DNA of 63,858 bases, the filler included, from Reticulomyxa filosa (lineage: Eukaryota; Protista; Foraminifera), in assembly GCA_000512085.1 (NCBI GenBank). It is 12 parts of 12 records of this genome, joined end to end, with 100 filler letters (N's around TTAATTAATTAA, not from the genome) between each part and the next. Parts side by side here need not be neighbours in the genome. Positions count along the whole stretch, not along the records: positions 1 to 25,816 come from ASPP01024706.1; 11 more parts are not named here. The stretch is one strand, 5' to 3'. Of this stretch, positions 758 to 24,350 are shown one piece after another (positions within the stretch are counted from its first letter, which is position 1; the number at the start of each line of letters is the position of its first letter). The notes beneath the pieces are model-generated. The model was not told where the DNA came from and searched no databases. It saw nothing but the letters and a program-made list of their open reading frames with translations. Both the position numbers and the translations under genes were made by a program.

Positions 758-1732
758 TTAAAAATGGTCAGTTTGTTTTGGAGCAAATGTAAAGTCATAC
801 AAAGCCGAATCTTGACTTTCCACATAAAATTGTGGCACACTTTTTTGTGTATCTCTTCGAATTTGTCGCAATATTTGTTTCAAAGGACAAGAATTTTTTA
901 GCATTGGCAGCATTGTGTTTTTTAAGTAATTGCTCAATAGAGATGAGTGATTCAAAAGATGCAGCTTTGTGAATGACGAAATTGTAAAAACTCCATTGTC
1001 ATTACAGCAGTCCACTGGTTCCGGTTTTGTGAAAGTGTTAGGAAGATTGTTATCACTTTGACACATATCAATAATGAAAAATTTAAGGCAATTTTTGAAC
1101 GAAGGTATTTTGTCCTCTGCAAATGTGGCACGAAATTCGTCAATAGAAATTTGCTCCCCTTCGCTCGTAACTAAGAATTTTCCATTGGTTCCATGTCCAC
1201 AAAATATAATAATCAATGCATCATAAAGGTTGTGGTTCTTGCGTAATTTGTGCTCTCTGATGAACGTGGTAAAGAAATCTTGCACATCTTCTTGTGTCAT
1301 TTGCGCATTTTCATTGCACACAAAATCATATTTTAATTCGTTTTGAAATATTTCCTTATAATTTGCCAGAACTTTTTCTTTGACATTAGGGAGATTGGGA
1401 AATGTGCACTGACTCGAATATTTGCTAATGGCAATCATTGCTACACAAGCATTTCGAATCACTTTCAATATGGGTGATGGCTCATTTGTTTGTGACCTCC
1501 AACTAGTCTTCAATAATGGTTCATTCGATTTAAACGTGCTCTCCACATCTTTGTCACATGCAATCACTCGATCTTTGTCGTCCGTGATTCGCAATTCGCT
1601 TTTCATCTTTTGCATCTGTGCGAATTCCTTCCAATCCAAATGTCCATGAATTTGACGATACAATTCCAAATATGTTAGTGTATCCATTTTTATGTCTTTT
1701 TTCGTCTCGTTTATCATTACCTTTGCCACTTT
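758..1732 (-). CDS. Caspase/paracaspase-like protease (peptidase C14 fold) with an N-terminal PB1/ubiquitin-like segment; probably the 3' exon of a Kelch-caspase gene
   Basis: His motif LIIIFCGHG and Cys motif KFFIIDMCQS; first strand NACVAMIAISKY. Upstream ITDDKDRVIACDKDVESTF resembles the PB1 acidic (OPCA) motif. AG acceptor at 1734-1733 is in phase 0; first internal ATG at 1717. Confidence 0.8.
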   Translation of the reverse strand, partial: KVAKVMINETKKDIKMDTLTYLELYRQIHGHLDWKEFAQMQKMKSELRITDDKDRVIACDKDVESTFKSNEPLLKTSWRSQTNEPSPILKVIRNACVAMIAISKYSSQCTFPNLPNVKEKVLANYKEIFQNELKYDFVCNENAQMTQEDVQDFFTTFIREHKLRKNHNLYDALIIIFCGHGTNGKFLVTSEGEQISIDEFRATFAEDKIPSFKNCLKFFIIDMCQSDNNLPNTFTKPEPVDCCNDNGVFTISSFTKLHLLNHSSLLSNYLKNTMLPMLKNSCPLKQILRQIRRDTQKSVPQFYVESQDSALYDFTFAPKQTDHF

Positions 1733-2060
1733 CTTATTTTTTAAAAAAAGAGTTGTAAGTATCAAGAAAGGGAAAATATTATTGTTGATTAATTATGTAA
1801 ATATTTCTTCACTCAACTGGAACAAAATCACGTTTCTGTTTTACTACTGCATCCTACCGACAAACAAGCAAATATTAAAATCATAAAGATATTATATTAT
1901 CTTGATTTCCAATACACAATTTTGCATAAACACAGATATTTTTTTTAATTTGAAATAAAACAGGACTGACATTTACTTGCAGAATTTCCAACCAATCATC
2001 CATCTTCTCATCAATGTAATATTCATTGTCTGATCCACTTTATGAAAGATGTCGATCTCG

Positions 2061-3245
2061 TTACTGGCACTTGGTGATCTGTTTCCATCGCTTGAAGCGA
2101 AGGCTGGTTAAAAACAGGCTCGGAATTGGCTCCATTTTGATACGGGAAATGGTTGTGGTGGTAGTAATGGAATTGCTGTTGTTTACATTGACAGGAGTAG
2201 TTAATTGTGTGGAGTGTTGGTTAATATTTGTATCGACCGGTAAAAAAAAATCAATTTGCGATTGAAAGTGATTGGGCAAAGCCCTCACGCCGGAAAACCC
2301 TCCCAAAACGTGTAGTGTTTTATTGTCTTTGGCCATTACGCACGCGTTCCAACCCAAAGCTTGAGGCAAGGTATGAGTGCACTTGGCCCATGCTTTGTCT
2401 CTGATAGAGTACGTATAAACAGAAGACGTATAAGCTTTACGAGCGTTGGAATAGCCTCCAAAAAAAACAATGAAATGGTCCACACGTATGTAAGCATAGC
2501 AATTAAAAGAGGCAATCTCTTTCGACACTGGAAGCTGTTGCACAACAAATGAAGAGGTATCTTCATCATAGATAATATGTAATCCGACATTGAAAGATAT
2601 CAATAGCATTTCAGTTTTTGACGATGTTTCTCTGCCATTAATATAACTTTGGGCTGGGGACACAAAACAATGAAATTGGAGTCCGTGATCACTTCTTGGG
2701 ATTGGCAACTCGTTTTTGCTGGCAGTGGTTATGTATTCGTAGGTATTCAAATCGATAACGTCCATTTTGTTTGACCAATGTGTAAGAAACAATAAATTTC
2801 CCTTCTTCCCTCCGATTATACCTCGCACTCCTTGCAAATGGTCTTTTTTTCTTCCAATTATCACTGTTTTTCCATTGTGAATTAATGGAATCCATTGATT
2901 TAACACCTCTCCATTCAATTCTCTTTTCGGTTTCCAAACACTCATATATTTCATTACTAACGTGTGCTTCTTTTGGTCCACATTTTGTCCCCCAAATGAT
3001 AAGAGAGTAATTGTGTCATCTTCAATATTCCCTCCAATTTTTATTACGCAATGACCCTCCAATTTTATGTCGATTGGATATGAACAGATCAACTTGTATT
3101 CGTTTTGGAGAACATGATATGAGTAGCAGTTGGGCTTATTGTAACCACCACAGATGAGAATTTCGTTGTCGTATGCCACACATTGCGTTAAAGAAAGAGG
3201 TACAGGCAAAGGAGGCAAAGATTGAAATGGAAAATCATTATCCAT
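2061..3245 (-). CDS. Kelch-repeat beta-propeller protein (lineage-expanded family)
   Basis: EILICGGYNKPNCYSYH, ITLLSFGG, FIVFFGG...VYTYSIRDKAW, LHVLGG. Clear paralogue of the ORFs at 36293-37393, 39874-40473 and 40989-42224. Confidence 0.85.
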   Translation of the reverse strand: MDNDFPFQSLPPLPVPLSLTQCVAYDNEILICGGYNKPNCYSYHVLQNEYKLICSYPIDIKLEGHCVIKIGGNIEDDTITLLSFGGQNVDQKKHTLVMKYMSVWKPKRELNGEVLNQWIPLIHNGKTVIIGRKKDHLQGVRGIIGGKKGNLLFLTHWSNKMDVIDLNTYEYITTASKNELPIPRSDHGLQFHCFVSPAQSYINGRETSSKTEMLLISFNVGLHIIYDEDTSSFVVQQLPVSKEIASFNCYAYIRVDHFIVFFGGYSNARKAYTSSVYTYSIRDKAWAKCTHTLPQALGWNACVMAKDNKTLHVLGGFSGVRALPNHFQSQIDFFLPVDTNINQHSTQLTTPVNVNNSNSITTTTTISRIKMEPIPSLFLTSLRFKRWKQITKCQ

Positions 3246-4589
3246 TTTTTTTTTACTGTTGTTTCCTGTGGAAAATCTTTTTTCAACTTGCTGGCAGTTT
3301 TTACTTTTGTCAACGCTTTCAAAAAAATGTTAAAACGTATATATGTAAATAAATTATAATAATCCTCATGAAAGTAAATTTTCATTCCCAAGTTACGAAG
3401 AATAAAAAATATGTGTATTGTAACATATCGTTCTTTTCCTTTTGGCAGTAACCTTAAAGTCAAATACATTTATTTCATTACATCTCAATACTACAATCCA
3501 TTCAAAAAAATGACAAAACAAAAGCACTTACAATAAGTATCAATTTCAATAACAAAGCAAAAATATTTCAACTTTTATTCGTCAAAAAAAATACATTCAA
3601 ATAAGTTACGTATAAATAACGTATAAATTGATAATTACTGTTAATTTATATATTTGACAGAACGAAAAATACAATTAAAAAAGTATAACTAATAATACAC
3701 AAGCGCAAAAGAAAACTATGTTCAAAAAAGATCTCTCACACTGATTGAATGCCCGTCTAAATAATGAAAGTTGTTGCTAATTTTGACAATTTCAATAACT
3801 GGTATTCAACTGTTGTGTGTAAGTATATCATTGGTTTGACAAGTAACAATAATTTCTTATCAAAACGTCTGTGTGAAATATATTTTCATGTTTTGTTTAC
3901 CTAGTTAAGACCAAACTTGACAAAAATAACACAGATGCTTTCACAATTGCTGCCAATTCTAAAAGATATTAACATTGACATCTTCATCTCTGATAATACT
4001 TTGCTTTGCAGCTCCATGAGAGATAAAAAAATTTAAAAAATGGAACTACGTTTCCCCTTGTGTTGTTTGTTCAACCAATTTTTTGACTAATTTTGATTTG
4101 AATTTTTATTTATGAATATTTTCCATACGTGGCTCATTGAACAAATCTCACACTACCGTCCTCAAGCAATTATGTTAGAGCAAATTCTTCGTTACATTTA
4201 TACTTCTTTAAATAAAAAAAGTAATATCACTTGGATGTTGACAGATAATATTATCGTAATATTCATAAAATGGTTTGTACATTATTTGCATTACAATAAT
4301 GGATAAGACATTTCTAAAGAATTAATTTGAGAACATTGATAATTGAATAGTGACGTACTTTGATAAACGTATATGATATCTGTGATGTGATCCAAAAACG
4401 AAGACTCTTTTGCGAAAACAAGTATTTAATAGAGCATTTGCATTTTGCCAATGCCCAAATTTATCTTTTTTGGACATGATATTAACTCAAATTTAAAAAC
4501 CAGAAAGAACTAAAATTAAAAATATTGATTTTTCAATGTCAAGTTATTTTTGTTTTCACTGATATATGCTATTTGTATAGTCAAATCAT

Positions 4590-6134
4590 TTATAAATGAT
4601 TTGCTTGAATACCTTCAAATCTATCTTTCCAATAATTATCACAATATGGCTTTTCAAATGTGCCTGTTTTCATAGGAGGATACATCCAATAAGATAATGC
4701 CAAATGTGAATTTAAACTAGGATTAGAGAGTGATGTAACCTCATGAAACCAGCCAGAAGGAAGATATAACATTTCTCCTTCTTTAATCGTGACAACAATT
4801 TTTTCATGTTTAATTTGATTATATTTTGGAAACTTTTTAATAATTTCAGTTTCACTCTCACGCAAATCGATTTGACTGAATGACATTGGATTATCTTCCG
4901 TTTCAAGATCAAAGGCATTTTTTTCAAGAGAAGAACAGGATCCATTGTTCAATTTTCTTTTTTTGGAAGGTGGTCCATTTTGCATTTCTTTTTCTTTCAC
5001 TTTGTCCAACACTTACATCATACAAAAAGATTGAGATATGTAAAAGTTAATTTAATTCAAAAAAGACAATGTTTGTTATATATGCTGTGTATTGAACTTT
5101 TGTCCATGTAATCATCAATATTAGTTTCTTCATTATCTTCATCAAATGAAGAAAAAGCTTCATCATCATCAAAATCGACATCCTCTTCATCATCGTCAAT
5201 TTCTTCTTCTTCCTTCTTCTTCTTCTTTTTGATCATTGTTGATCCCATCATTTTCTTTCTCTTGTTTCATTTGTTTATGACGATTCCATTTATCAACTAA
5301 CAAAAGATCGGCTCCATCTTCTCGAACTTGGACTCCCCAATCATTTTTATAACAAATGAGTCCATTGTCGTAGACTTGGCTAATTTCACCATTGACATAT
5401 AATTGATGCACGCAATGAGGAGGGAACAATGTGAAAGTTTTCTCACCTCGAATGACCAAATAGATATTGTCATGAAAATCGTGATGCAATTTTGATTGGG
5501 TCCCTGTTTTTTTCGACTCTTCGTGTTTTTTTTCTTCTTTTTTCTTTTCACTTCCTGAATGGCCCATCCACATGTTTATTTGATGTGTTATTAAACTGGG
5601 ACAAATATCACTCAAAATCAGTGGAAAGTCTTCTTTCAATGAAGCTAGTGGATGACTGTACAATTCTAATGGTCCCTTTTCGTCTGTCTATTTTTCCAAG
5701 TGTTTAATGAAATGTTACATCTTTTGTGTGTATGTTTTTTTTTTGTTCTCACTTACTTCAATGTCCTGAACCGTCATGTAATATAAATCTTCACCAGTTT
5801 CCAAGAGGTTTAAAAAGTCGCAAAATGGTAACAACACTTTATTACTTGTTCCAAATTTTTCTTTATCTGAATTTCTTGTTTCCACCTATGTTTTTTATTT
5901 TGCTCTTTTGTCCTATCATTGCCTGTTTTTCAATGCTTGAGTATTAACTTTGACAATTTCATTTTCGCATTTTTGTTTTAGGTATTTGTTTGATTTCCAG
6001 TTTTCAAAAGCTTTTTCTAGAGAGTTGCTGATAAATTTTATATGAGCAGGTTTTCGTGCTGATATAAAGTTCTTGAAGAACTCTTGTGGTGGCAAGGGAG
6101 AAGTCAATTCGGTAACAAAGTTTGGCAGTTCCAT
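4590..6134 (-). CDS. JmjC/cupin-like 2-oxoglutarate Fe(II) oxygenase, multi-exon
   Basis: INMWMG, SKLHHDFHDNIYLVIRGEKTFTLFPP (HxD) and EGEMLYLPSGWFHEV (distal His). Acidic low-complexity insert with an apparent frameshift near 5200-5250. Confidence 0.85.
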
Positions 6135-6578
6135 TCTTCTTTAAGTTTTTTTAAAGTTAAAAAAAAGTTTAGTCAACAAGTAAGTGGCAAATTAGAATTG
6201 ATTGACGATTCTAATCAAAATTTCAATTGAATTTACAAAAATTTGACTTAACAGAAAAAGAAGAACGCTCGTAAATATTTAACGTGTGTAGGATTGTCCT
6301 ACAAAGCAACAAAAAAAAATGAATTTTCACTCTTTGCCAGCCATATTTTTAATTTGTTACAAAAGTTCATTGCCAAAGTTTTTTAAGATAAGTCTTGAAA
6401 TGTAGTTGTGAAGATTTCATTATATTTTGTACTGAAAAAAGAGATCATTTTGACAATATGATTGTATGTAATTTAATTCGTTTTCGATTTGGTGTGGGCA
6501 TTTTTTTGAAAACTTTAAAATAAAGCATTTAGGAAAATCATTGTTTCCTCAAAAAAAAGTAATAAAAAACCAAACAAT

Positions 6579-8107
6579 TTATTTTTTGGATGTGGGTTTG
6601 TTAAATTTGAAATACATTATATCACCGTCCTGAACTTCATAGCTTTTTCCATTTTGAATGTATTTGCCGTTTGCTTTGGCAGCTGATTCACTGCCACATT
6701 TTTTAAAATCTTTGTAGGACATTGTCTCAGCACAAATAAAGCCTTTTTCAAAATCGGTGTGAATGGTACCAGCTGCTTGAGGAGCTTTAGTAGTAGCACG
6801 AACAGTCCAACAGCGAACCTCATCTTCACCGGCAGTAAAAAAATGAATCAAATGCAAAGCTTTGTATCCACTGGTAATGATTTTATCTAACATTGATCTG
6901 GTTTTGTGTTCTTTCAAATAAGCTTCTCGTTTGCTTTCATCCATTTCTAGTAACTTTTTAAAGTCAAAAAAACAATACCAAATAGAAATATAATTTGTGA
7001 AAGACAAAGAGAGAAAGAGCAAATAAAGACAAACCTTTGCTTCAAAAACAGCACTAAAAGGAATAACCGCAGATCCAGGGAAATGTTTGTCAACCCATTC
7101 CTGAATAACTCCAATAAATTTATTGGATCCTTTTTCCCAATCAGACATTGATACATTGACCAAAAATACAACAGGCTTCGCTGTAAATAAATTATATCCA
7201 CGAATGTATTCAATCTCATCACTTGTCCAATCGGCGTAATTGACATCCTTTCCAGCCTCTAACACTTCTTTGATTTTACCTACCACTTCCTTTCCAATTG
7301 TTATTGTTTTCAGTAAACAATCAATTTAACATAAACATCAACACAATAACCTTTTTTAAAATAAAAAATTATTACCAACTCTTTTTTAATTTTGCGATCA
7401 TTACTTCGTTTCGCCATTTTTTCCATGTTTTCAAATTTGCCCGCAATTGTTTGTCGATCTTTTGCTCTTAATTCAAAGGAAATTGTTTCTAAATCACGAA
7501 TTGGGTCCACTGATCCATCAACATGCTCTACCATCTTATCTTTGAATGCTCTTACCACGTGATATATCGCATCCACGCTTTGGATATTTGACAAAAACTC
7601 ATTTCCCAAGCCTTTGCCTTCATGTGCGCCACGCACCAAACCGGCGATATCCCATATCTAAACATGTTTCACAAGAAATATACGTTTTGCATATAAAAAA
7701 TTTCATTTTCTCTCCCCTTTTTTTCCCCTCCCGATTTAATTTTTTTATTATTTTCTTTGGAAAAGTTGAGCGGAAAATCGGATGTAAGAAAATGTCTGGG
7801 ATTTTAGAATAACTTCGAGCACTGCTTGAATACGCGATCGTGGGGCATACACTTCACATAAATGAGTCCAGCGCTTGTCTGGTACAGCGACTATGGCTTG
7901 TGCGGGCTGAATTGTACAGAAAGGGTAATTTTCCGCTGGAACTTGTTTCGTTGAAAAAGTATTGAATAAAGAGGATTTCCCGACGTTTGGCAACCCCACT
8001 ATACCTATTCGACATTTGTTTTTTTCCAGTTTTCCCAAAAACGGTCGTGAGGCTACTTTTGGCTTTTTTTCGTTTTCAGTTTCAGTTGGTTCAGGTTCCT
8101 GCGCCAT
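6579..8107 (-). CDS. OLA1: Obg-like ATPase 1 (YchF family), 4 exons
   Basis: GIVGLPNVGKS P-loop, ENYPFCTI, DIAGLVRGAHEGKGLGNEFL, FFTAGEDEVRCW, KAPQAAGTIHTDFEKGFI, YEVQDGDIMYFKFN; GT-AG introns join the ORF pieces. Confidence 0.97.
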
Positions 8108-8648
8108 CTTTCTCAAATAAAAAAGAAATGCAAGTTAAATGTCTCCCAAATAAAAAGAGTTTTTGACTCTTTTTTATCTTGCACGCGCCCCGGACGAGGA
8201 CTTTCAAACTTGTGAATTTGATTTAATTGTTTTTAGCTAAAAAAAAATAAAGCAGTGACAACAAAAATGTAGTCAACTCTAAAAATTGTTTGTTTTTTCT
8301 TTTTTTCCATTGACTGTGTTATTCAAAAAAAATGTTTTGATTAATATGTATTTAGATGAACAAAAATATACACAAGTATTGGCAGATCATTCACATACGT
8401 TTTAAAACATTATAATTGTATCTATAAATGATAAATATTTTTTTATCTTATGAAATAAAGCTAGGCTAATACATAGTTCAAGCACAAGTAAAAATGATTT
8501 AAAATTGAATTTTTCTCTTTATCTATGCCATCCTTGGATTAAAAACATCTCACAGTAAGTGAATAATAAGCGTAAAACACAATAAAAAGCCACTATCAAA
8601 AATGTGAAATGACCCCTACGGAAAAAACTATATATATTGATATATTTT

Positions 8649-11568
8649 ATGAAGACAATCAAATCGTGGTTTGGAAGGATCAGTACTACTAGTAGACATA
8701 ATACAACGAAACCTCATGTGTTAATAAAGATCCCAAGTGTAAAACAGGTGGAAACCGAGGAAAAGACAGAGACCCCACGCAAAAAGAAAAAACACAGAAG
8801 CAGTAAGAAGGACGAGGGCTCGAAAAAAGAGTATGACGATGAAAAAGGAGAGCAATCACAAATTAACAGCAAGGAAAGCAGAACAAAATCCAAAATGGAG
8901 GAAGGGAAGCAACAAAGTCGTGGAAAAGCGGATTCCAAATTAAAAAAAAAGAATAAAAAAGCGAGAGATGAAAATGATCAAAATCAAACCCAAGAATTTT
9001 ATTTCCAAAAAAAGCAACAACTACAAGTTTAACTTCACACCACTGGTGACAATTGCAAACATAAAATAGTATTTAGTTTCATTTGTAACATATAAAAATA
9101 TGTATACATATATATAACACATACATTATGAATCTCAAGACGGAATAAATTTGTGTGTACACTTTGTGGGAGTATGGATCATAGTTTACAGTTCAAGTGC
9201 AGTATCGACAGCAATCTTGGACGTTATACCGATCATTCAATGAGTTTGTAGAATTATGGGATCAATTGAATAGCAAGTATGGCATCTCAATCGAATCCAC
9301 AAAACTTAAGATTTTGCCACTATTCCAACATCCCCCCATCCAAACCACAAACAAAAATGTTCATCAGCGCTCTCAAAAGAGTTTAACCACACCCACGTAC
9401 ATAGTCCACCTTTTTTTTTTTTTGTTCATTCAAATTGGTGTTTACTGCATGTGCACGCTGATCACTCAGCAAAAAAAAAAAAAAGGGGGCGCAAACAGAA
9501 AAAACAATTATAAAAAAAAAAGAATCAAAAAAATACGACTTCGAAAATCTGCCCCCGACAAGGGAATCCTCACGGTCGACCTCGCACATGGACAACATGG
9601 CATATCAGTCAGATTTTGTATCTGCATTTGATACGAACAAAGTAGCAGAACAGTATCAACCTCTTCCATTAGGTAGATAAGGAGAGAGCGTTTATACTTT
9701 GTTGTTCCTCACAAGTTGATCGACTAACATAAAAACAAAAAAAAAAAAAAAAGATGTACGCTTTGCTCGAACAAACCCAGATGAATCTCCCTTTGTAAAA
9801 ATCTTACGTAAATCATTGGAAGAGTGGCTGCAAAAAGTAATTCAAGATGAGGTGTACATTCGAAATGACGAAGTTTGCAACTTTATTCAATTTTATCTCG
9901 TTGTGACTGAATCGAGCAAAAAACAAAAGAAAGTGGAAAAGTGGATGCATATTGCAGATCACGCACATATGCATAGTGGCGACGCCAATGGCATGGATAG
10001 ATCCACGAAATCAACGAAATCAAAGGAAGGGGTCGGAATGAGCGATCAGCAGCAATTATCGGAGCAGGGAAAAAAGACCAAAAGCGTAGGCTTGCATGAC
10101 TTTACATTACTTAAAGTAATTGGAAAAGGGGCCTTTGGCAAAGTGTTGCAAGTTCGAAAAAAGGATACCAATAAAATGTATGCCATGAAAATATTGAAAA
10201 AGGAAAATGTTATGAAGAGAGAGCAAATCGAACATACGAAAACCGAGAGAAGGGTATTGGGCTATATCCAACACCCTTTTATTGTTGCTTTGGATTACGC
10301 CTTTCAATCCGAGACTAAGTTATACTTAGTCTTAGATTACTGTCCAGGAGGAGAGCTCTTTTTCCACTTGGGCAAAGTCAAGCGCTTTAAAGAGGATCGC
10401 GCTAGATATTATGCTGCTGAAATTACTTTGGCGTTGGAGTATTTGCATTCCAAAGACATTGTTTACAGGTTTTGTAAAATTTTTTTTAAAAAAAACGTTG
10501 TTCAATACATTTTTTTGTAAGCAACATAAAATCAAATAACGTACAAAACAAAACTCTCCTCTTTTTATCCTTTCATATATGCACAGGGATTTGAAGCCAG
10601 AAAATGTACTGCTCGATGGTGAAGGTCACATACGACTGACAGATTTTGGATTGTCCAAAGAACGTATCAATGATGAAAACTTGACGTATTCGTTTTGCGG
10701 AACTCCAGAATACTTGGCACCAGAGATATTAAGAAAAGTTGGACATGGGAAACCCAGCGATTGGTGGTCCTTAGGCGCACTGTTGTACGAAATGATGACT
10801 GGAATGCCACCTTTTTATAGTCGCGATCGCGATCGATTATTTGAAAAAATACTCCACAGCAAAATCAAATTTCCTACACACTTCAGTGAAGCTTGTTGTC
10901 ATTTGCTTATGTCTTTAATGCAGCGGGATCCCAATCATCGATTAGGTTATTCGTATGCACTTGATTTTTTTTTTTAAATATGTCCGTGTTTTCAACATAA
11001 ACAAGAAAAATACTTTCACGAACACGTGGCAATTATTAAAACAACAGGAACATTTGATGATGCCAAGCCAGTCAAGGCGCATGTATTCTTTAGGGGCATT
11101 GACTGGGACTTATTACTGAATAAAAAAGTGTCACCACCTTTTGTTCCAAAAATTGAGCAAGATACTACGGGATGCGTGGGTGTGAACAACTTTGATAAGG
11201 AGTTTGTGGACATGCCTATTGATTCTCCTGAGGATAATAAAAATCCAAAACGCATTTCTGACAAAAAAGCCTCCTTGCTGTTCTTTGAGGACTTTACATT
11301 TGTCCGAGAGCAAGAGGTTTGTATGAATGACGCCAAAAATGAGACGAACAGTGATAATACTAGCGAAAGTGATAGTGATAGTAGCACTGATAGCGGACAG
11401 GCAGAGGACAATAATATTGGTGTGTATCCATTAGCAGACGATACAACAATGTCTGGACAAAATAACCAGTTTGGAGGCTCCATTGGTGAATACAACAATC
11501 AATTCAGAGCAGAAGATTATGCACAACACGCTGTTGCAAAAACTACTAGTTCATCACCGCACATATAA
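8649..11568 (+). CDS. AGC Ser/Thr kinase (SGK/Akt/S6K-like) with an upstream PX-like domain, multi-exon
   Basis: IGKGAFGKV, YAMKIL, YRDLKPEN (split by intron), DFG, SFCGTPEYLAPE, tail NFDKEF...DSP, hydrophobic motif FEDFTF. PX-like WTLYRSFNEFVELWDQL and LEEWLQKVI...EVCNFI. Confidence 0.92.
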
Positions 11569-15172: not shown

Positions 15173-17284
15173 TTATTCTTGGAAACAAGAATGTGGACTG
15201 TCTGGAGCCTCTCTCGAGTTCACATGCTTAAGAGGACCACCACCAACTCCTCTTCCAATAAGTAGACATCGAAAGTATTCCAAACGATCAAAAGCAGTAT
15301 CAATATTTCTGGAGGTGCTCCACAAATTTTCAGCAGCCGCAGCGGCCTTTGGCCAAACAGTCGCGTCCAACACACTCAAATCAATGTGCTCACTCCACAT
15401 GCAAGCCTCCCCTCCTAAAACATGTTTTTTGTAATGCTCACTTTCATGTTCAATACCTTCGAACATGTTGTTATTATAATAGTCTTGCCATGCAGTTTTC
15501 AGATGATCCAGATACCATCCATGGCTAACCAAGATATCGTAGCCATTTAGAGCAGCAGAGCGTAGCAAGTTCTTTCCCATCCACAAATGTATGACAGTGT
15601 CTTTTGGGACTTTGGTTTCAAAATTTTTGTAAACTTCTTGCCAAACAATTGGCCGTTTTTTATATTTTGACGCAATTGCAGTGGCTTTGTCCGCCCACCA
15701 CCGATAGATATCGTGTCCCTCGGACAAATGTTCTTTTTTCAGCCATGCCTTTACTTGTTCGTCGTTGTCGTAACACTCAAAGCGGACCTCGTCCATCCCT
15801 ATATGTGTCATATGCAAACAAATGGATTTGTCTTAACAAAACAACGAACAAAAATAAACACAAAGCATTAACCCAAGTGCAAGAACTGATCCGGGAATCG
15901 CTGACTTGCCTCTTTGAGTACACCTTCAACGATTTCAAAGGTCAATGGATTGCTAGGGTCCAGCAAAGTCGGTGATGGTCTCCTACAAGAGGCGCGAATG
16001 CATATTTCGGGATAGCCTTTGCACCAAGAGCCGGCATGTCCGGGAGTGTCGAATTCCGGAATGACACGAATCCCTCGGAATCGGGCATAGTCAATGATTT
16101 CGAAGATATCCTTTTCGCTGTAGCGCTCGTGAATGCTGTAGCTGCCATTCCACAAGTTTGGAAATGCGTTGCTTTGATACGGAAATGACTCCTCGTCTAC
16201 GACGTGCCAATGAAACACATTAAACTTTGCGTAGCTCATTGCGTCCAACAGATGTTTGATCACTGTCGGCGGATGGAAGTGTCGCGACGTATCCAGTAAT
16301 ATGCCGCGATGGGCAAATCTCGGCTTATCATTAATCGATGCTAACATGATTTTATACGTATCCGTGGCAAAGTCATAGCGAATTAGTTGGGATAATGTCT
16401 CCAAACCTCGCAATGCTCCAAACACAGTTCCAGCGCGAAGCAATATTTTATTGCAGTTCACACCTTTTTTTAAACAATCCCAAATACATATTAATATAAA
16501 AACATTTGTGTATACATCATTTCAAATACATGTTTTTTCTTTACAAAAAGAAACTGTTTGAAGGAAGCGCCGGAACAATCAATTCGTAAGATTCGTCCAT
16601 ACTCAATTCCAATTCAACGTCATCGTCTTTGTCAATGTGCAACACCACTCCATCAAAGTATTCATGATATACTCGCGGCTCACTTGAGACGGTGTGAGAA
16701 AACATAATGTCCTGATATCTCTTCACGGCCTCGTGCAATATCTCATGCTTAAAGTTGGTCTGAAATGTCATTGGCAATTGAATTGGGACATCGTAGTCGT
16801 ACAGGTCAATCGAGTGGGGCATTGGCCACACTTTTATGCGATTCAATTGTCTGATTAACTGATATCTCGAATAGTCTTTTGAAAATTGACATTCACTTCC
16901 GTTCTGTTGTTTCAAAGATGGATCTTGCCCATTGTCATTTTGCGTTTTGTCGTCTACGCTCGGCATCGATGGGATTTTCGGCTGCGTAAACACGCCATCC
17001 GTTTTGTTCAACTCTCGAAACACAACCGGATTTGGCGATTTTCCCTCATATATACTCAGCACATTGTATTTTTTGGAATCATATTGTATTACTTTTGTCT
17101 CACCAGCCCAAAAATTATATTTGAACAACAGCCCGACAATCAGCCCAACCAAAACCAACGCTATTGTAATGAACAAGCGGAACAATAATTTACCTGGAGC
17201 ACCTTTGCCAAGTAAACCAGGTGAAATGGTCAACCGGGACCGAGCCCTTGTTGAAAGACGGTCATTTCCAAAATTTGTGGCCAT
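15173..17284 (-). CDS. Beta-N-acetylhexosaminidase (GH20), predicted type II membrane anchor, 3 exons
   Basis: VWPMP, DESYEL, GALRGLETLSQL, DKPRFAHRGILLDTSRHF, FNVFHWH, PEFDTPGH, HLG|MDE catalytic motif, GGEACMWSE, VWPKAAAAAENLW. One TM helix near the N-terminus. Confidence 0.95.
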
Positions 17285-17599
17285 GTCCACAAAAAAAAGC
17301 TTTCTGGGTTCCTCCTGACAATTAAACCTGTGATAAAGGCATACCGCTACTATAACTAAAAACGTTAGATTCAAACATTTGGCAAACGAGTGGATACGCG
17401 CAATTGTTAAAATATATTTGAAAAAACAATATAGACATAAATCACTGATCAATTCAAATTATCCAAGTTCCAGTTTGCAACTTGTAAAACTTATTTAACT
17501 TAAAGTTAGTATGCTTTTGTCTTTTGTTTGTTATAAGCGTTATTTAATTTCTTTTTAGTTAATTAATCTGTATTTATTTCTAAATTCAAGCAAAAGGTA

Positions 17600-19039
17600 A
17601 ACAAGATCAGTAAATAAGCGGTCTTTCAAACATGGCACAACACATCGGAACTACTTTTAAGAATGCTAGAAACAATACACGCATCACTAGACAAAAATTC
17701 TGTAACGTATTCTGTCATGCTGGATATATGCGCGGCGTATGACAGTGTATGGAGAGACGGATTGAGATATAAAATAAGAAACAACTTTAACATAAAAGGG
17801 AGAATGTATTGGTGGATTGACAGCTTCCTTCGTGAACGAGCTGGAAAAGTAGTACTAAATGGAGCATCTTCGCAACTTTACAACTTCAGAGTTGGAGTAC
17901 CTCAAGGGTCGGCACTATCTCCTATACTATTTCTATTATATATAAACGATTTGACAGATGTGATCCACCATCCAATACAAAGCGGAATGTTTGCAGATGA
18001 TGTAGCATTATGGACGTCAATTTTCACTGAAGACACAACAGAAATGCAAAGACAAATGGAGCTGCTACAATATAGTTTAAACGGAGTCAGTGAATGGGGA
18101 TGCAAATGGAAAATGGCTCTAGCCCCCCAAAAGTCACAATGTATCACCTTCCGATCCAAAAATAAAAAGAAATATCCAAAACTAAAAATTAAACTGGATA
18201 ACACTGATATCAAAGAAAAAGACCAAGTAAAATATTTAGGACTTATCATAGACTCCAAACTTACATACAAACAACATGTACATTAAATATATGGAAAAGC
18301 CGCTCGGAAACTTGGATATCTAACTTATTTATGCTCATACAAAGGAATAAAGCTAAGCTTATCGGTTTATAAACTTCTATTCAAAACAATCATTCTACCA
18401 ATATTGGAATACGGATGCCCTTTTTGGAATGGTACATCGGAAGTGTACAAGAAAAAACTAGAGAGAATCCAAAGGATTGCATTATGTAGAATACTGGGAG
18501 TAATGAGTTGGACTGCCTACGACACAGTAAACATGATGGCACAAATGCCACCTCTGGAATTACGGAGGCAGCAAGAAGAAGTAAAACTATACCATAGATG
18601 CATACAAATATCGGAACAACTCCCAGAACACAATTTAACACTGGCCTATCGATTATGGGAGCAAAACCACAATGTCCCCGAAAACGAGTTTTACTGTTGG
18701 AGAGGGAAATTATCGCCTTTGTCAAGGGCATGCATTCATGCGGAAGAAATGAAGATCCCGACAATCACCCCCGACAAAAAAGCGATAATTAATAAGCCTC
18801 CTATGCAACGAAAAAAAATCCCATGTCCCAATAAATCTCCTTTCCCTCAAAATGCAGAACCACCAGCAGAAGAAATTCTAACATCAATCAATAATAAAAC
18901 AACTGTTATCTATACAGATGGAAGTGCATTTCCAAATCCTGGCATTGGCGGAGTTGGAGTAATTATACAAGACCAATCAAACCAAGAACATGTTGAAATC
19001 GAACATCCAGTAAATGGAATTAACAAAAAAGGAACCTAG
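17600..19039 (+). mobile_element. Degenerate non-LTR retrotransposon ORF2 fragment (reverse transcriptase + start of RNase H)
   Basis: LDICAAYDSVW, GVPQGSALSPILF, MFADD, VKYLGLIIDSKL, ILPILEYG, RNase H VIYTDGS...GGVG. In-frame TAA at 17615-17617 and 18284-18286; truncated at both ends. Confidence 0.93.
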
Positions 19040-21532: not shown

Positions 21533-24350
21533 ATGCAGGCATTTCGAAACATGGTCTCTTCGTTGACGCGCGCCGCTGACGGCAAACACCCATCTGATGA
21601 AGTGTTGCAAAAATACCGTGAGGATTTGAATGGTTTGCGTGACGAGGTTGTGCAAATTCGTCAACAATTTACATCTTACAGTGATAGCTTCGTTCACGCG
21701 GCGGAATCTGCAGTGGTCTTGTCGAAATCGATAGTTCAATTCTATCAACAGGGGGAGCCATCTGCCATTAAAGCAGCACAGTTTATCATAGAAGAAGGAG
21801 AAAGGGGCAAACAAAAAAAAACGTATACAAAATTTTTTTCTTTGTTTGTCTGTATATGATGTTTGTAAAAAGAAGTTTGGAACAAATTGACAACTGGGAC
21901 ATAGGATATATAATCATTCGAACGAAGAAATAGCGGACACGGCAGTGAAGCTGTTCCAGCAGCAGCAACACTCACCAGAAGGGCTGATTAGTGAGTTGGA
22001 CAATTGGTTGCAAGTGATTCGTCTGTTGCATCAAGAGATTGAAGACGCGGAACGAGCTCGAGCTGCGGCACAAACGACAAGCGATCGCCTATATTCGCTG
22101 AAAGAACAACACGAACGACTGAAAAAGAAGCAGTCGTCTGCAGGCAGCACAGCCGTAGGGGCCCAAGAACTTCGAGACTTGGAGGAACGAATCAAAGACA
22201 CCACCAATGTGAAAATATCTTTGACAAAGGATTTCCAAGACCAAAAACAAAAAATCGGGGACGCCGTCACAAACATGCTGAAAGAAAAGTATCACATATT
22301 TGATCGCGTGTATGTACAGTTGTTGGAATGTCAATTTGCGTGCGCCGGTGCGTATAACGATTTGATGAAGCCTTTCAAAGGTTTGATCGACTTGTATCGC
22401 AAACAATACTCGCACATTAATGAAAATGGCGACGCACATCCCTTGTATCAATCTACCAATCAATTGTTGCAACGCACAAAAATTGACGCCAATCCTCTGG
22501 ACCAAGCCCGTTCCCCTAGACATATTAACCAGGACACGACAGAGGCAAATACAAATCACGATGATCAGATCAGCGTTAACGTCAATAACGACGCTCATGC
22601 CAATAGCAGTGTCAATGACAACAAACCTGTGGAAAATGGTGATCACCACCAAAGCGATGAAAAGGAACTCAATGGCGTTCTTCACACACGAAGCGACAGT
22701 GATGACAACACTGCAGCCACGAAGAGCAACAAGAGTGCGACCCTTTCCAATGATGACCCTTCTCACTCAGTTGACTGTTCTTTCTATTCAAATGTGTCAT
22801 ATGCACACACAAACTCATCAAACATTATTTAACCAAGTGTGTTGTTGCTTGTATGAAAAACAGGAAACACAAGGCATGTCTTTTTTTATCGTCGGTTTTT
22901 GGGAGAAAAATCCAAAAGGGGAGATGTTTTTTTAAACCTCCTTTTTGTCTTTGTATTGTCTTTAAAATGTAGTGGTGAAGAACTCAGTTGAATCGAAGGT
23001 CAAAGCACCACCACCGCCCACTCAGCCACCCCCGCCTTTGCCTGGAAAAAGTAAGGCTCAGCTCCAGCCTCAGCCTCAACCTCAACCTCCTCAACCTATC
23101 CCACAACAAGATCAAGCCGATTTTTTATCGGAATACTTTGGATCAGTGACGACAGATACATCATCAACGTCAATTCCACAAGAGAAACGCGTTTTGTTTC
23201 TTCGATCAACAACAAAAAAACTAAAGCAGAACTCGAGAAAACAAACGTAGACAAATTTCAAAACAATATTTGTTTGGTTTGTTGTTTATAATTCGCAGGT
23301 ACAAAAAGTAGTAGAGACAGCTAAACATGAATATGGAGACTTTATAACGGGAAGCCAAATCGTCACGGAAGCAAACAATAGTTCTGCGGGTAACGTACAA
23401 TCTTCAATAGGATATTTATTTTCAACGGACAGTGTCTCTGAAAAAAGCAATACTGTGGAAAACACGCAAAAAAAGGATACGACAGCCAAAAATGAAAATG
23501 ACAAACCATCGTCCGATATGCTTCCTCATATGGAACGCCATGACAGTACTGATTTTTGGGGAATGTTTGGCAACACCACCAACCAAGAATCACAAACATC
23601 AAAAGTTGCAACGAAACCGACACCGACAATAACATCAACATCAACTTTAGCTTCCACCACTGCCAAACATGATCATGTGAATGTTTTGTTTGGATCGTCA
23701 GAGCCATCACGGTTTTCCAAATCCGAATCACAGATATCTAGACCCACAAATGCAAATTCTTCTCCTCGACGACGCAATCAACAGTCGGGTCAGCATTTAG
23801 AACCTGTCAATGAACAGGCTAAATCAAAACCAGTGTCTCCCAATGTCTCTGATGTCGAGTTAAAAAAATAAAATGAAAAAAGGAAAAGGGAGGATGGTGT
23901 ACAAGCATAAAAATGCTTAATATTTGTGGTCTTTTTTTGACAATTGTCAGAGATGAAAGCAAAATTGAAGAACGAGTAAAAGAGCGAATACGTTTTGTTA
24001 AAGAGTCATATGAAATCGAAGCAAAAGATCACGCTGAACGAACGAAATATAAAGATGAATTAGAGACAAGATTGGATGAGTGGGAATATAATAGCGGAGT
24101 CAGACGCAACATTCGATCATTACTGACAAAGTTGCCGGAGGTATTGTGGGAAGATTCTGGATGGAAACCAGTGAGTTTGGGCGATTTGGTTCAACCGGCC
24201 AAATGTAAAAAAGCATATCAAATGGCTTTGAGAGTTGTTCATCCAGATAGAGCGGCTAATCGTGGAGATGATGCAAAAAATGCTGTCATTTGTGAGCGAG
24301 TTTTTACTGCGCTTAACGAAGCTTGGAATGAATTTGAGAAGACAATGTGA
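21533..24350 (+). CDS. Auxilin/Swa2-type J-domain co-chaperone with N-terminal BAR-like helical domain
   Basis: C-terminal NIRSLLTKLPEVLWEDSGWKPVSLGDLV...KAYQMALRVVHPDR...FTALNEAWNEF is the auxilin J-domain. Pro-rich disordered linker; helical N-terminal ~250 aa. Confidence 0.85.

Follow-up and report, generated by a model that had tools for sequence, protein, structure and literature searches.

A probable Kelch-PB1-like-caspase gene in Reticulomyxa filosa, and the foraminiferal family of modular caspase-like proteases to which it would belong

The window analyzed here is a 63,858-nucleotide (nt) stretch of DNA from the freshwater foraminifer Reticulomyxa filosa. Coordinates without a locus name count along this whole window, and the locus in question lies on the 25,816-nt contig ASPP01024706. 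Two open reading frames (ORFs) there, one encoding a Kelch beta-propeller and the other a PB1-like beta-grasp domain followed by a caspase-like protease, are most likely exons of a single gene in a foraminiferal family of modular caspase-like proteases, a reading to which we assign a probability of about 0.6. An earlier reading made from the DNA alone (the sequence-only reading) had proposed a Kelch-PB1-like-caspase fusion gene here. That architecture is almost certainly real in the family and the fusion is probable at the locus itself, but the exact splice model put forward did not hold up. Every feature that the sequence-only reading had described was found in the DNA where it had been placed. 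An ORF scan placed the Kelch ORF at 3245-2061 (minus strand, 394 amino acids [aa]) and the caspase ORF at 1765-758 (minus strand, 335 aa). They are co-oriented and separated by 296 nt end to end, or by 344 nt to the first ATG at 1717, in agreement with the spacing of some 300 bp that had been noted. Random stops are expected at about 6 to 7% of codons at the local base composition, and the remaining frames in the region hold ORFs of fewer than 95 codons; the Kelch and caspase ORFs are far longer than chance would give. Searches and folding treated the Kelch ORF and the last exon as separate pieces. The features of the locus are as follows.

2064 to 3245, minus strand: Kelch beta-propeller exon (ORF, Pfam Kelch matches, N-terminus alignment)
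2038 to 2064, minus strand: 27-nt GT..AG segment holding two TAA codons, G+C content (GC) 0.37, exon-like
1977 to 2039, minus strand: Kelch frame open again (SGSDNEYYIDEKMDDWLEILQ), of exon-like composition, with matching sequence in no paralog
1733 to 1976, minus strand: AT-rich noncoding stretch, GC 0.25; one or more introns, or a spacer under the two-gene reading
1733 to 1734, minus strand: splice acceptor AG, phase 0, four codons before a V-(I/M)-I motif (conserved position, mapped introns)
1493 to 1732, minus strand: PB1-like beta-grasp domain, last-exon residues 1 to 80 (AlphaFold2, VIA-align, Foldseek)
761 to 1471, minus strand: caspase-like protease domain, p20 and p10 in one chain (Pfam PF00656, profile against PDB, Foldseek)

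The AG at 1733 had been taken as the acceptor that opens the caspase exon, and its position proved to be conserved in five paralogous loci. An AG at the identical codon, with an AT-rich tract before it, occurs at L001, L004, L005, L006, and L008 as it does in the window. At those five loci the terminal exon has no ATG ahead of the conserved residues, and it is therefore spliced to upstream sequence rather than serving as a first exon. In the window, the residues VAKV, encoded upstream of the ATG at 1717, align with the conserved x-A-Y-V of the family. A sensor ORF was found directly upstream and on the same strand in all eight loci with upstream DNA (L001, L002, L004, L005, L006, L008, L010, and the window), encoding Kelch in seven and TPR in one. 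Alignment of the family proteins P0003 and P0010 to the window gave two collinear blocks, first 3188-2253 and then 1729-1037. The two proteins also start at the position of the ATG at 3245, which is the true Kelch start and from which the frame is open until the TAA at 2063-2061; the caspase ORF stops at the TAA at 760-758.

The distribution of change across the locus points the same way. The terminal branches of the window copy are long in both halves, at 1.59 changes per site for the Kelch part versus a median of 0.44 and at 0.83 for the caspase part versus 0.45. Despite this, long open frames are kept in both halves, and the only stops, two in number, are confined to 27 nt of linker sequence. 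Such a pattern fits a noncoding or tolerant linker between constrained exons better than random decay, and it argues against the latter. Composition also supports one gene, being exon-like (GC 0.33 to 0.45) from the Kelch ORF to about 1977 and then intron-like (0.25) over 1976-1733.

GenBank/NCBI lists two genes at the locus, RFI_28603 and a separate 319-residue Peptidase_C14 gene. The RFI_28603 model (509 aa; 3469-1881, minus strand) reads past the GTAAAT at 1976 as far as a TGA, treats the 27-nt segment 2064-2038 as an "intron," and carries a 5' extension attached via a 32-nt "intron" at 3287-3256. The two annotated starts are the following.

3256 to 3469, minus strand: spurious 5' extension of RFI_28603 (exon mapping of P0002; counterpart in no paralog)
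1715 to 1717, minus strand: ATG starting the annotated 319-residue caspase gene (L009 5753-6712 corresponds to window 1717-758)

A parallel mis-split is found at L010 (ASPP01007755; L010 2528-5258), whose Kelch and caspase parts are likewise annotated as two genes, 147 nt from one another. The first residue of the caspase model there is the methionine inside the conserved DKWMKWW, with an AG five codons ahead of it. The two-gene annotation of the window locus is probably an artifact; the split is shared with this paralogous locus, where the annotated start falls inside a conserved exon. The "introns" of 23 to 32 nt in GenBank models all patch stops or remove conserved residues, and they lie at these positions.

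Window 3256 to 3287 and 2038 to 2064
L008 2593 to 2619 and 2787 to 2809

GenBank models of the R. filosa assembly also add unsupported 5' extensions, and several caspase-family genes are split or truncated. Counts of domain architectures taken from the R. filosa annotation are unreliable and will be too low.

The Kelch ORF matched Pfam Kelch_6 at 38.4 bits (cutoff 25.3), Kelch_1 at 24.3 (20.1), Kelch_4 at 24.4 (21.6), and Kelch_3 at 24.1 (22), and more than 120 Kelch proteins of R. filosa share 40 to 46% identity with it, with E values down to 1e-79. A word-index homolog search with the caspase ORF matched only itself, and relatives were taken from an exhaustive search, which gave 206, with 65 at an E value of 1e-10 or below. 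The source was looked up for the ten top relatives; nine were from R. filosa and one was from a metagenome. Paralogs with the same architecture had been named as a check on the fusion, and they exist. When 151 family proteins (the representatives of 50%-identity clusters together with P0003, P0010, and P0270) were scanned with our own profiles, nine combined an R. filosa-type Kelch domain with a caspase domain. Annotated R. filosa single proteins with Kelch and C14 domains are RFI_11541, RFI_17079, RFI_12165, RFI_21820, RFI_03392, and RFI_22965. The first of these, which is P0003, consists of Kelch, beta-grasp, and caspase without the helical module described below, and this is the architecture that we infer for the window. 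P0145 is one unbroken ORF of 731 codons running from Kelch to C14 on a 2268-nt metagenome contig of the Joint Genome Institute (JGI), and two further foraminifera, Bolivina argentea (P0203) and Nonionella stella (P0224), have Kelch plus C14 proteins in their EukProt sets. Both species are known in the literature from transcriptomes (PMC8153729), which is said of the species and not of the EukProt records. Given P0145, P0203, and P0224, the Kelch-caspase fusion is more than a gene-predictor artifact, and we have almost no doubt that it is a genuine architecture of this family.

The modules follow a regular order, with an N-terminal sensor, an optional helical module of 74 residues, an optional beta-grasp domain of about 80 residues, and the caspase domain. 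The N-terminal module may be a Kelch propeller, TPR (RFI_04677), a TRAF-type zinc finger (RFI_37412), or none that is annotated. Mapping of annotated proteins onto their loci showed that the module boundaries are phase-0 introns. A Pfam scan of ten family members found no NACHT, NB-ARC, or other nucleoside triphosphatase (NTPase) module. In a literature search that did not cover the R. filosa genome paper, no paper mentioned Reticulomyxa together with Kelch, and the search found no paper describing foraminiferal caspase domain architectures. The kinship of R. filosa C14 proteins to caspases was already known; new here is the pairing of a caspase with exon-shuffled sensors and an adaptor of the beta-grasp type.

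The helical module (KKWMKWWKERNEKDK...DFE-WLL..SKWKN) has no Pfam match and forms a phase 0-0 exon between sensor and beta-grasp. It occurs in about 20 family members and twice in RFI_21820, and its exons were located as follows.

L004 2028 to 2249
L005 1559 to 1780 and 1841 to 2068
L006 361 to about 560
L010 about 3984 to 4200

At L006, positions 361-1687 and 1829-5108 hold two family members in tandem on one contig. The first unit, helical-beta-grasp-caspase, is cut by the contig start, and RFI_12165 (Kelch-helical-beta-grasp-caspase) follows 140 nt later.

The course of splicing between the two ORFs is less clear. The sequence-only reading had the Kelch frame resume past two TAA codons and end at a GTAAAT donor in phase with the acceptor at 1733, and these elements are all present. 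The TAA codons, at 2063-2061 and 2042-2040, lie 21 nt apart and both inside the 27-nt segment, and the Kelch frame beyond them is open until the GTAAAT at 1976. That donor and the AG at 1734-1733 are each phase 0. A phase match of one donor with one acceptor arises by chance about once in nine cases, and taken alone it is weak evidence for fusion. Candidate sites were compared with 13 reference introns, 10 with ends set by module boundaries conserved between paralogs and 3 fixed by conserved protein sequence. The latter lie in kinase, hexosaminidase, and YchF genes of the window, at the positions below, and the others are at L001, L004, L005, L006, and L008.

10469 to 10586, plus strand
about 15797 to 15871, minus strand
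about 6952 to 7032, minus strand

All 13 begin with GTT(A/T), not GTR, and they are 59 to 118 nt in length; the GC of the three window introns is 0.23 to 0.29. From these 13 introns, Reticulomyxa seems to use GTT(A/T) as its 5' splice-site consensus, which would be unusual.

Several observations weigh against joining the two ORFs. The two in-frame TAA codons part the Kelch ORF from the sequence downstream. The donors of the proposed splice model, GTAAAT (1976) and GTAACG (2064), are unlike the GTT donors of every reference intron, and on a donor matrix built from the same 13 introns, which themselves score 5.4 to 10.4 bits, they reach only -0.7 and -8.4 bits. The 27-nt segment that had been suggested as a bypass of the stops does exist, but as an intron it would be less than half the length of the shortest fixed one (59 nt); neither it nor the GTAAAT donor resembles the introns of this genome. 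The best linker donors, GTTTATG (1931) at 4.2 bits and GTTTTAT (1961) at 3.6 bits, are candidates of the consensus type within 1733-1976, and both lie in phase 0 of the Kelch frame and could be joined to 1733; these too score below the reference range, as does every other donor in the linker. A 78-nt candidate intron, 2115-2038 (GTTTTTA...AG), would take out both stops and has an exon-like GC of about 0.47. Translation from the in-frame ATG at 1717 could yield an independent protein lacking little of the beta-grasp, which is the GenBank model. Divergence is seen in the window copy, too, at protease motifs that are conserved in the family, with WSTTKG changed to SSFTKL and CRG to CQS. Finally, co-inheritance of the Kelch-caspase pair is unsupported, because in a tree of 123 Kelch domains those taken from fused proteins form no clade (7 changes versus a shuffled mean of 6.9), a test that is weakened by the unreliability of "Kelch-only" labels.

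Path enumeration gave 430 stop-free, in-frame splice paths through the linker with GTT donors alone, and because so many can be drawn, no single path is proven. One all-GTT path uses introns 2115-2038, 1961-1854, and 1817-1733 (78, 108, and 85 nt), and a possible 36-nt micro-exon lies at 1853-1818 (minus strand). Single introns running from inside the Kelch ORF (donors 2309, 2288, 2237, 2192, 2186, and 2143) to 1733 were judged unlikely; they would be 415 to 577 nt long, with poor donors and an exon-like first half. No homology of the Kelch tail or of the SGSDNEYY... stretch was found among 269 family proteins. A lost helical-module exon was sought in the linker with the 74-residue profile (hmmsearch --max, three frames, stops as X) and with an exon DNA profile (nhmmer), and neither gave anything significant. 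A weak 8-residue match to the start of the helical module, RRWMIGWK against KKWMKWWK, lies at 2008-1985 (minus strand) in frame +1 relative to Kelch, where the helical module would be expected. Its tblastn E value of 0.03 comes from a very small search space, and the profile searches give a relic exon no support.

The chief alternative, considerably less probable than a single gene, is that there are two separate functional genes, one for a Kelch-only protein that stops at TAA 2063 and one for an independent PB1-like-caspase protein. The latter would start at the ATG at 1717, or at an ATG at 2003 with a short first exon spliced to 1733, and the conserved AG and the codons upstream of ATG 1717 would be relics of an ancestral fusion. 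Besides the GenBank annotation and the in-frame ATG, this alternative is favored by the paralogs, in that most R. filosa Kelch paralogs are annotated as Kelch-only proteins of 340 to 440 residues and 22 family members are annotated as beta-grasp and caspase only; donor-matrix scoring, moreover, found no strong donor near the end of the Kelch ORF. However, this is an annotation that demonstrably mis-splits the same architecture at L010 and L006 and patches frames with "introns" of 23 to 32 nt. The "short" models that were checked proved to be contig-end cuts (L007 and L011) or to have a Kelch gene just upstream (L010). Two genes would also require a terminator and a promoter to fit into a spacer of less than 350 nt, the first 90 nt of which are exon-like.

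Within the single-gene reading, and counted in its probability, is the rather unlikely case that the two TAA codons stem from compensating indels in the draft assembly. In that case a continuous exon starting at 3245 would end at about 1977 or 1932, and one intron would bridge the rest to 1733. Neither of the other two frames is interrupted in this region (they are open over 2222-2027 and 2107-1974), the composition stays exon-like through the stops, and the best linker donors, those at 1961 and 1931, would serve in the Kelch frame. Frame hops within conserved domains at L002 and L010 suggest that indel errors occur. Against this, two indels are needed, the critical stretch contains no homopolymer longer than 5, and neither alternative frame is homologous to any paralog. 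At L010 it is the Kelch exon that shifts frame twice, through either assembly indels or decay.

A decaying copy, in which real stops or a deletion broke an ancestral Kelch-(linker)-PB1-like-caspase gene in its linker and left halves that are recent pseudogene remnants or on the way to loss, seems to us a shade less likely still. It would account for the two in-frame stops, for the failure to find a consensus donor in the linker, for the longer terminal branches of both halves relative to the paralogs, and for the several altered protease motifs, and the family offers precedents in the frame breaks at L002 and L010; the RRWMIGWK match could be the relic of a lost exon. However, 394 plus 335 stop-free codons in AT-rich DNA after 0.8 to 1.6 changes per site need selection for most of the history of the locus, two random hits would be unlikely to fall both in about 5% of it, and the helical-module profiles, both protein and DNA, find nothing significant in the linker. 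Stop-codon reassignment is ruled out, since TAA ends the caspase ORF where the paralogs end too.

The caspase ORF matched Pfam PF00656 (Peptidase_C14) with an E value of 5e-10 and 39.9 bits (cutoff 21.4). The His-Cys dyad pointed out by the sequence-only reading is intact. The catalytic histidine lies in CGHG (codon 1195-1193, His180 of the last-exon product) and the catalytic cysteine in DMCQ (codon 1063-1061, Cys224), and the two align with ICGHG and ID-x-CRG of the family and with SHG and QACRG of caspase-3. AlphaFold2, run with a 22-sequence family alignment, gave a model of the last-exon product with a predicted local distance difference test score (pLDDT) of 85.6. In it, residues 88-324 adopt a predicted caspase-hemoglobinase fold and match caspase-1, -3, -7, -8, and -9 and CED-3 (Foldseek E values 2e-9 to 5e-8), with template modeling (TM) scores up to 0.80 by target. 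With the family profile against PDB, caspase-3 was the best match (E value 2.7e-12), and the best 60 matches were caspase-3, caspase-6, and an ancestral effector caspase.

The DMC motif had also been read as a likeness to paracaspases such as MALT1, and this did not stand. MALT1 shares the C14 protease class and the His-Cys pair and is activated by oligomerization. A MALT1-like paracaspase is nevertheless not supported, as the profile and the model match animal caspases, the family motif ID-x-CRG is like QACRG, and the p10 motifs are of the caspase type, with ST-x-x-GY as in caspases. No MALT1 chain was among the best 60 PDB sequence matches or the listed Foldseek matches, and a Pfam scan of the window ORFs found no death or Ig domains. 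In the profile alignment to caspase-3, Asp occupies the position of Gln161, and the four residues of the SWR loop that carries Arg207 have no counterpart; Arg64 falls outside the aligned region. Judged by this alignment, the two differences make Asp specificity doubtful. The R. filosa C14 proteins have been described as the closest nonanimal relatives of caspases (Klim et al. 2018, PMC5982838), and one of them was used as an outgroup in caspase trees (PMC10959488).

A beta-grasp fold upstream of the protease, which the sequence-only reading had called PB1-like, was predicted with high confidence in the last-exon model. Last-exon residues 1-80 modeled alone also gave a beta-grasp (pLDDT 88.6), with the element order beta-beta-alpha-alpha-beta-alpha-beta. 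With VIA-align, PB1 domains were six of the seven best structural matches to this predicted domain; those of MEKK3, Bem1, Par6, MEK5, NBR1, and p62/aPKC aligned over 68 to 72 residues at Z 8.0 to 8.4 and a root-mean-square deviation of 1.8 to 2.8 Å. Ubiquitin-like domains scored Z 7.3 to 8.1 and CIDE-N domains Z 7.0 to 7.2. The top Foldseek match was an NBR1 PB1 filament (E value 0.018). The name was not borne out at the level of sequence: Pfam PB1 (PF00564) had no match in 18 family members at E values up to 1, and the family profile matched no PB1 among PDB sequences at E values up to 10, so that membership in PB1 has no support from sequence. "PB1-like beta-grasp" is thus a fair description of the modeled fold, and sequence gives no link to the PB1 family. 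The domain shares with the PB1 domains of p62/SQSTM1, NBR1, Par6, aPKC, MEKK3, MEK5, and Bem1 the beta-grasp of about 80 residues and the order of elements. It differs in an extra helix (residues 34-43), and the Z margin of PB1 over ubiquitin-like, Ras-binding, and CIDE-N domains is less than 1.5. We know of no PB1 domain that adjoins a caspase.

Ahead of helix 2, an acidic S-D-E-D-V that is conserved in the family is replaced by C-D-K-D-V in the window, and in beta-1 the window has a lysine (VAKVMI) in place of the tyrosine of the family. Alignment to the family places these residue differences as follows.

1720 to 1731, minus strand: lysine for tyrosine in beta-1
1552 to 1563, minus strand: C-D-K-D for the acidic S-D-E-D

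In PB1 domains, head-to-tail pairing uses an acidic OPCA motif and/or a basic lysine of beta-1. We take the family motif I-E-S-D-E-D-V-x-x-x-F to resemble the last part of OPCA as it occurs in type-A PB1 domains. As a speculation, if the domain pairs like PB1, the window copy may be a "basic-face" partner of acidic paralogs.

If the locus is one gene, its order from 5' to 3' on the minus strand would be a Kelch beta-propeller from 3245 to about 2064-1977, a short unconserved linker with several possible splice paths, and a terminal exon from the phase-0 acceptor at 1733 encoding the PB1-like beta-grasp and the caspase-fold protease with its His-Cys pair. The propeller, or the TPR or TRAF zinc finger of paralogs, would bind a ligand or partner. 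The beta-grasp could then associate head to tail, as PB1 and CIDE-N do, and so gather the protease domains, in the role that CARD, DED, and pyrin domains play in animal initiator caspases, and proximity-driven dimerization would activate the protease. The P1 preference of the substrate is probably other than Asp, because in the alignment two Asp-binding positions of caspase-3 are replaced or missing.

This scheme has points of contact with several known systems. With the animal caspases (MEROPS C14A: caspase-3, -6, and -7, caspase-1, -8, and -9, and CED-3) the family shares the predicted caspase-hemoglobinase fold with p20 and p10 in one chain, the His in a GHG context, and the Cys in an x-C-(R/Q)-G-like motif (ID-x-CRG in the family, DMCQS in the window). 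It differs in having beta-grasp and repeat sensors in place of a CARD, DED, or pyrin prodomain. The CIDE-N domains of DFF40/DFF45 and the CIDE proteins are also beta-grasps that polymerize head to tail and control a cell-death effector, but they score lower than PB1, have no sequence similarity to the foraminiferal domain, and have a nuclease as their partner and not a protease. Apoptosomes, inflammasomes, and the fungal and bacterial caspase-like effectors with repeat domains combine a repeat sensor (WD40, LRR, or TPR) with an oligomerizing adaptor and a caspase-fold effector. The foraminiferal family, with its Kelch, TPR, and TRAF zinc finger sensors, is likewise large, diversified, and domain-shuffled; it differs in that sensor and protease are in one chain and the adaptor is a beta-grasp, not a death fold. 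It is tempting, if rather improbable, to suppose that foraminifera possess, without any NTPase, their own equivalent of the apoptosome or inflammasome, built of exon-shuffled receptors, a PB1-like polymerizer, and a non-Asp caspase, for self/non-self defense or regulated death in a giant multinucleate cell.

Animal-type caspases are usually regarded as a metazoan invention activated via death-fold adaptors. The present protist lineage possesses proteases with a caspase fold by the dozen, and these come nearest to the caspases of animals and are wired differently. If the architecture works in the manner outlined, it would mean that proximity-driven activation of proteases was solved independently here, and it would supply a candidate repertoire of innate-immunity or cell-death receptors in Rhizaria and a clear example of exon shuffling outside animals.

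Nothing in the neighboring genes of the window points to a cluster associated with the caspase locus. They are ordinary eukaryotic genes, at the following positions.

4590 to 8116, minus strand
9197 to 11568, plus strand
15173 to 17452, minus strand
21945 to 24350, plus strand

Pfam supports a Cupin_8/JmjC-like protein and a YchF/OLA1 GTPase among them, and an AGC-type kinase, a beta-hexosaminidase-like protein, and a J-domain/auxilin-like protein were named by eye. At 17663-19039 (plus strand), ORFs with reverse-transcriptase-like and RNase H-like motifs, read by eye from the translations, suggest a fragment of a non-long-terminal-repeat (non-LTR) retrotransposon.

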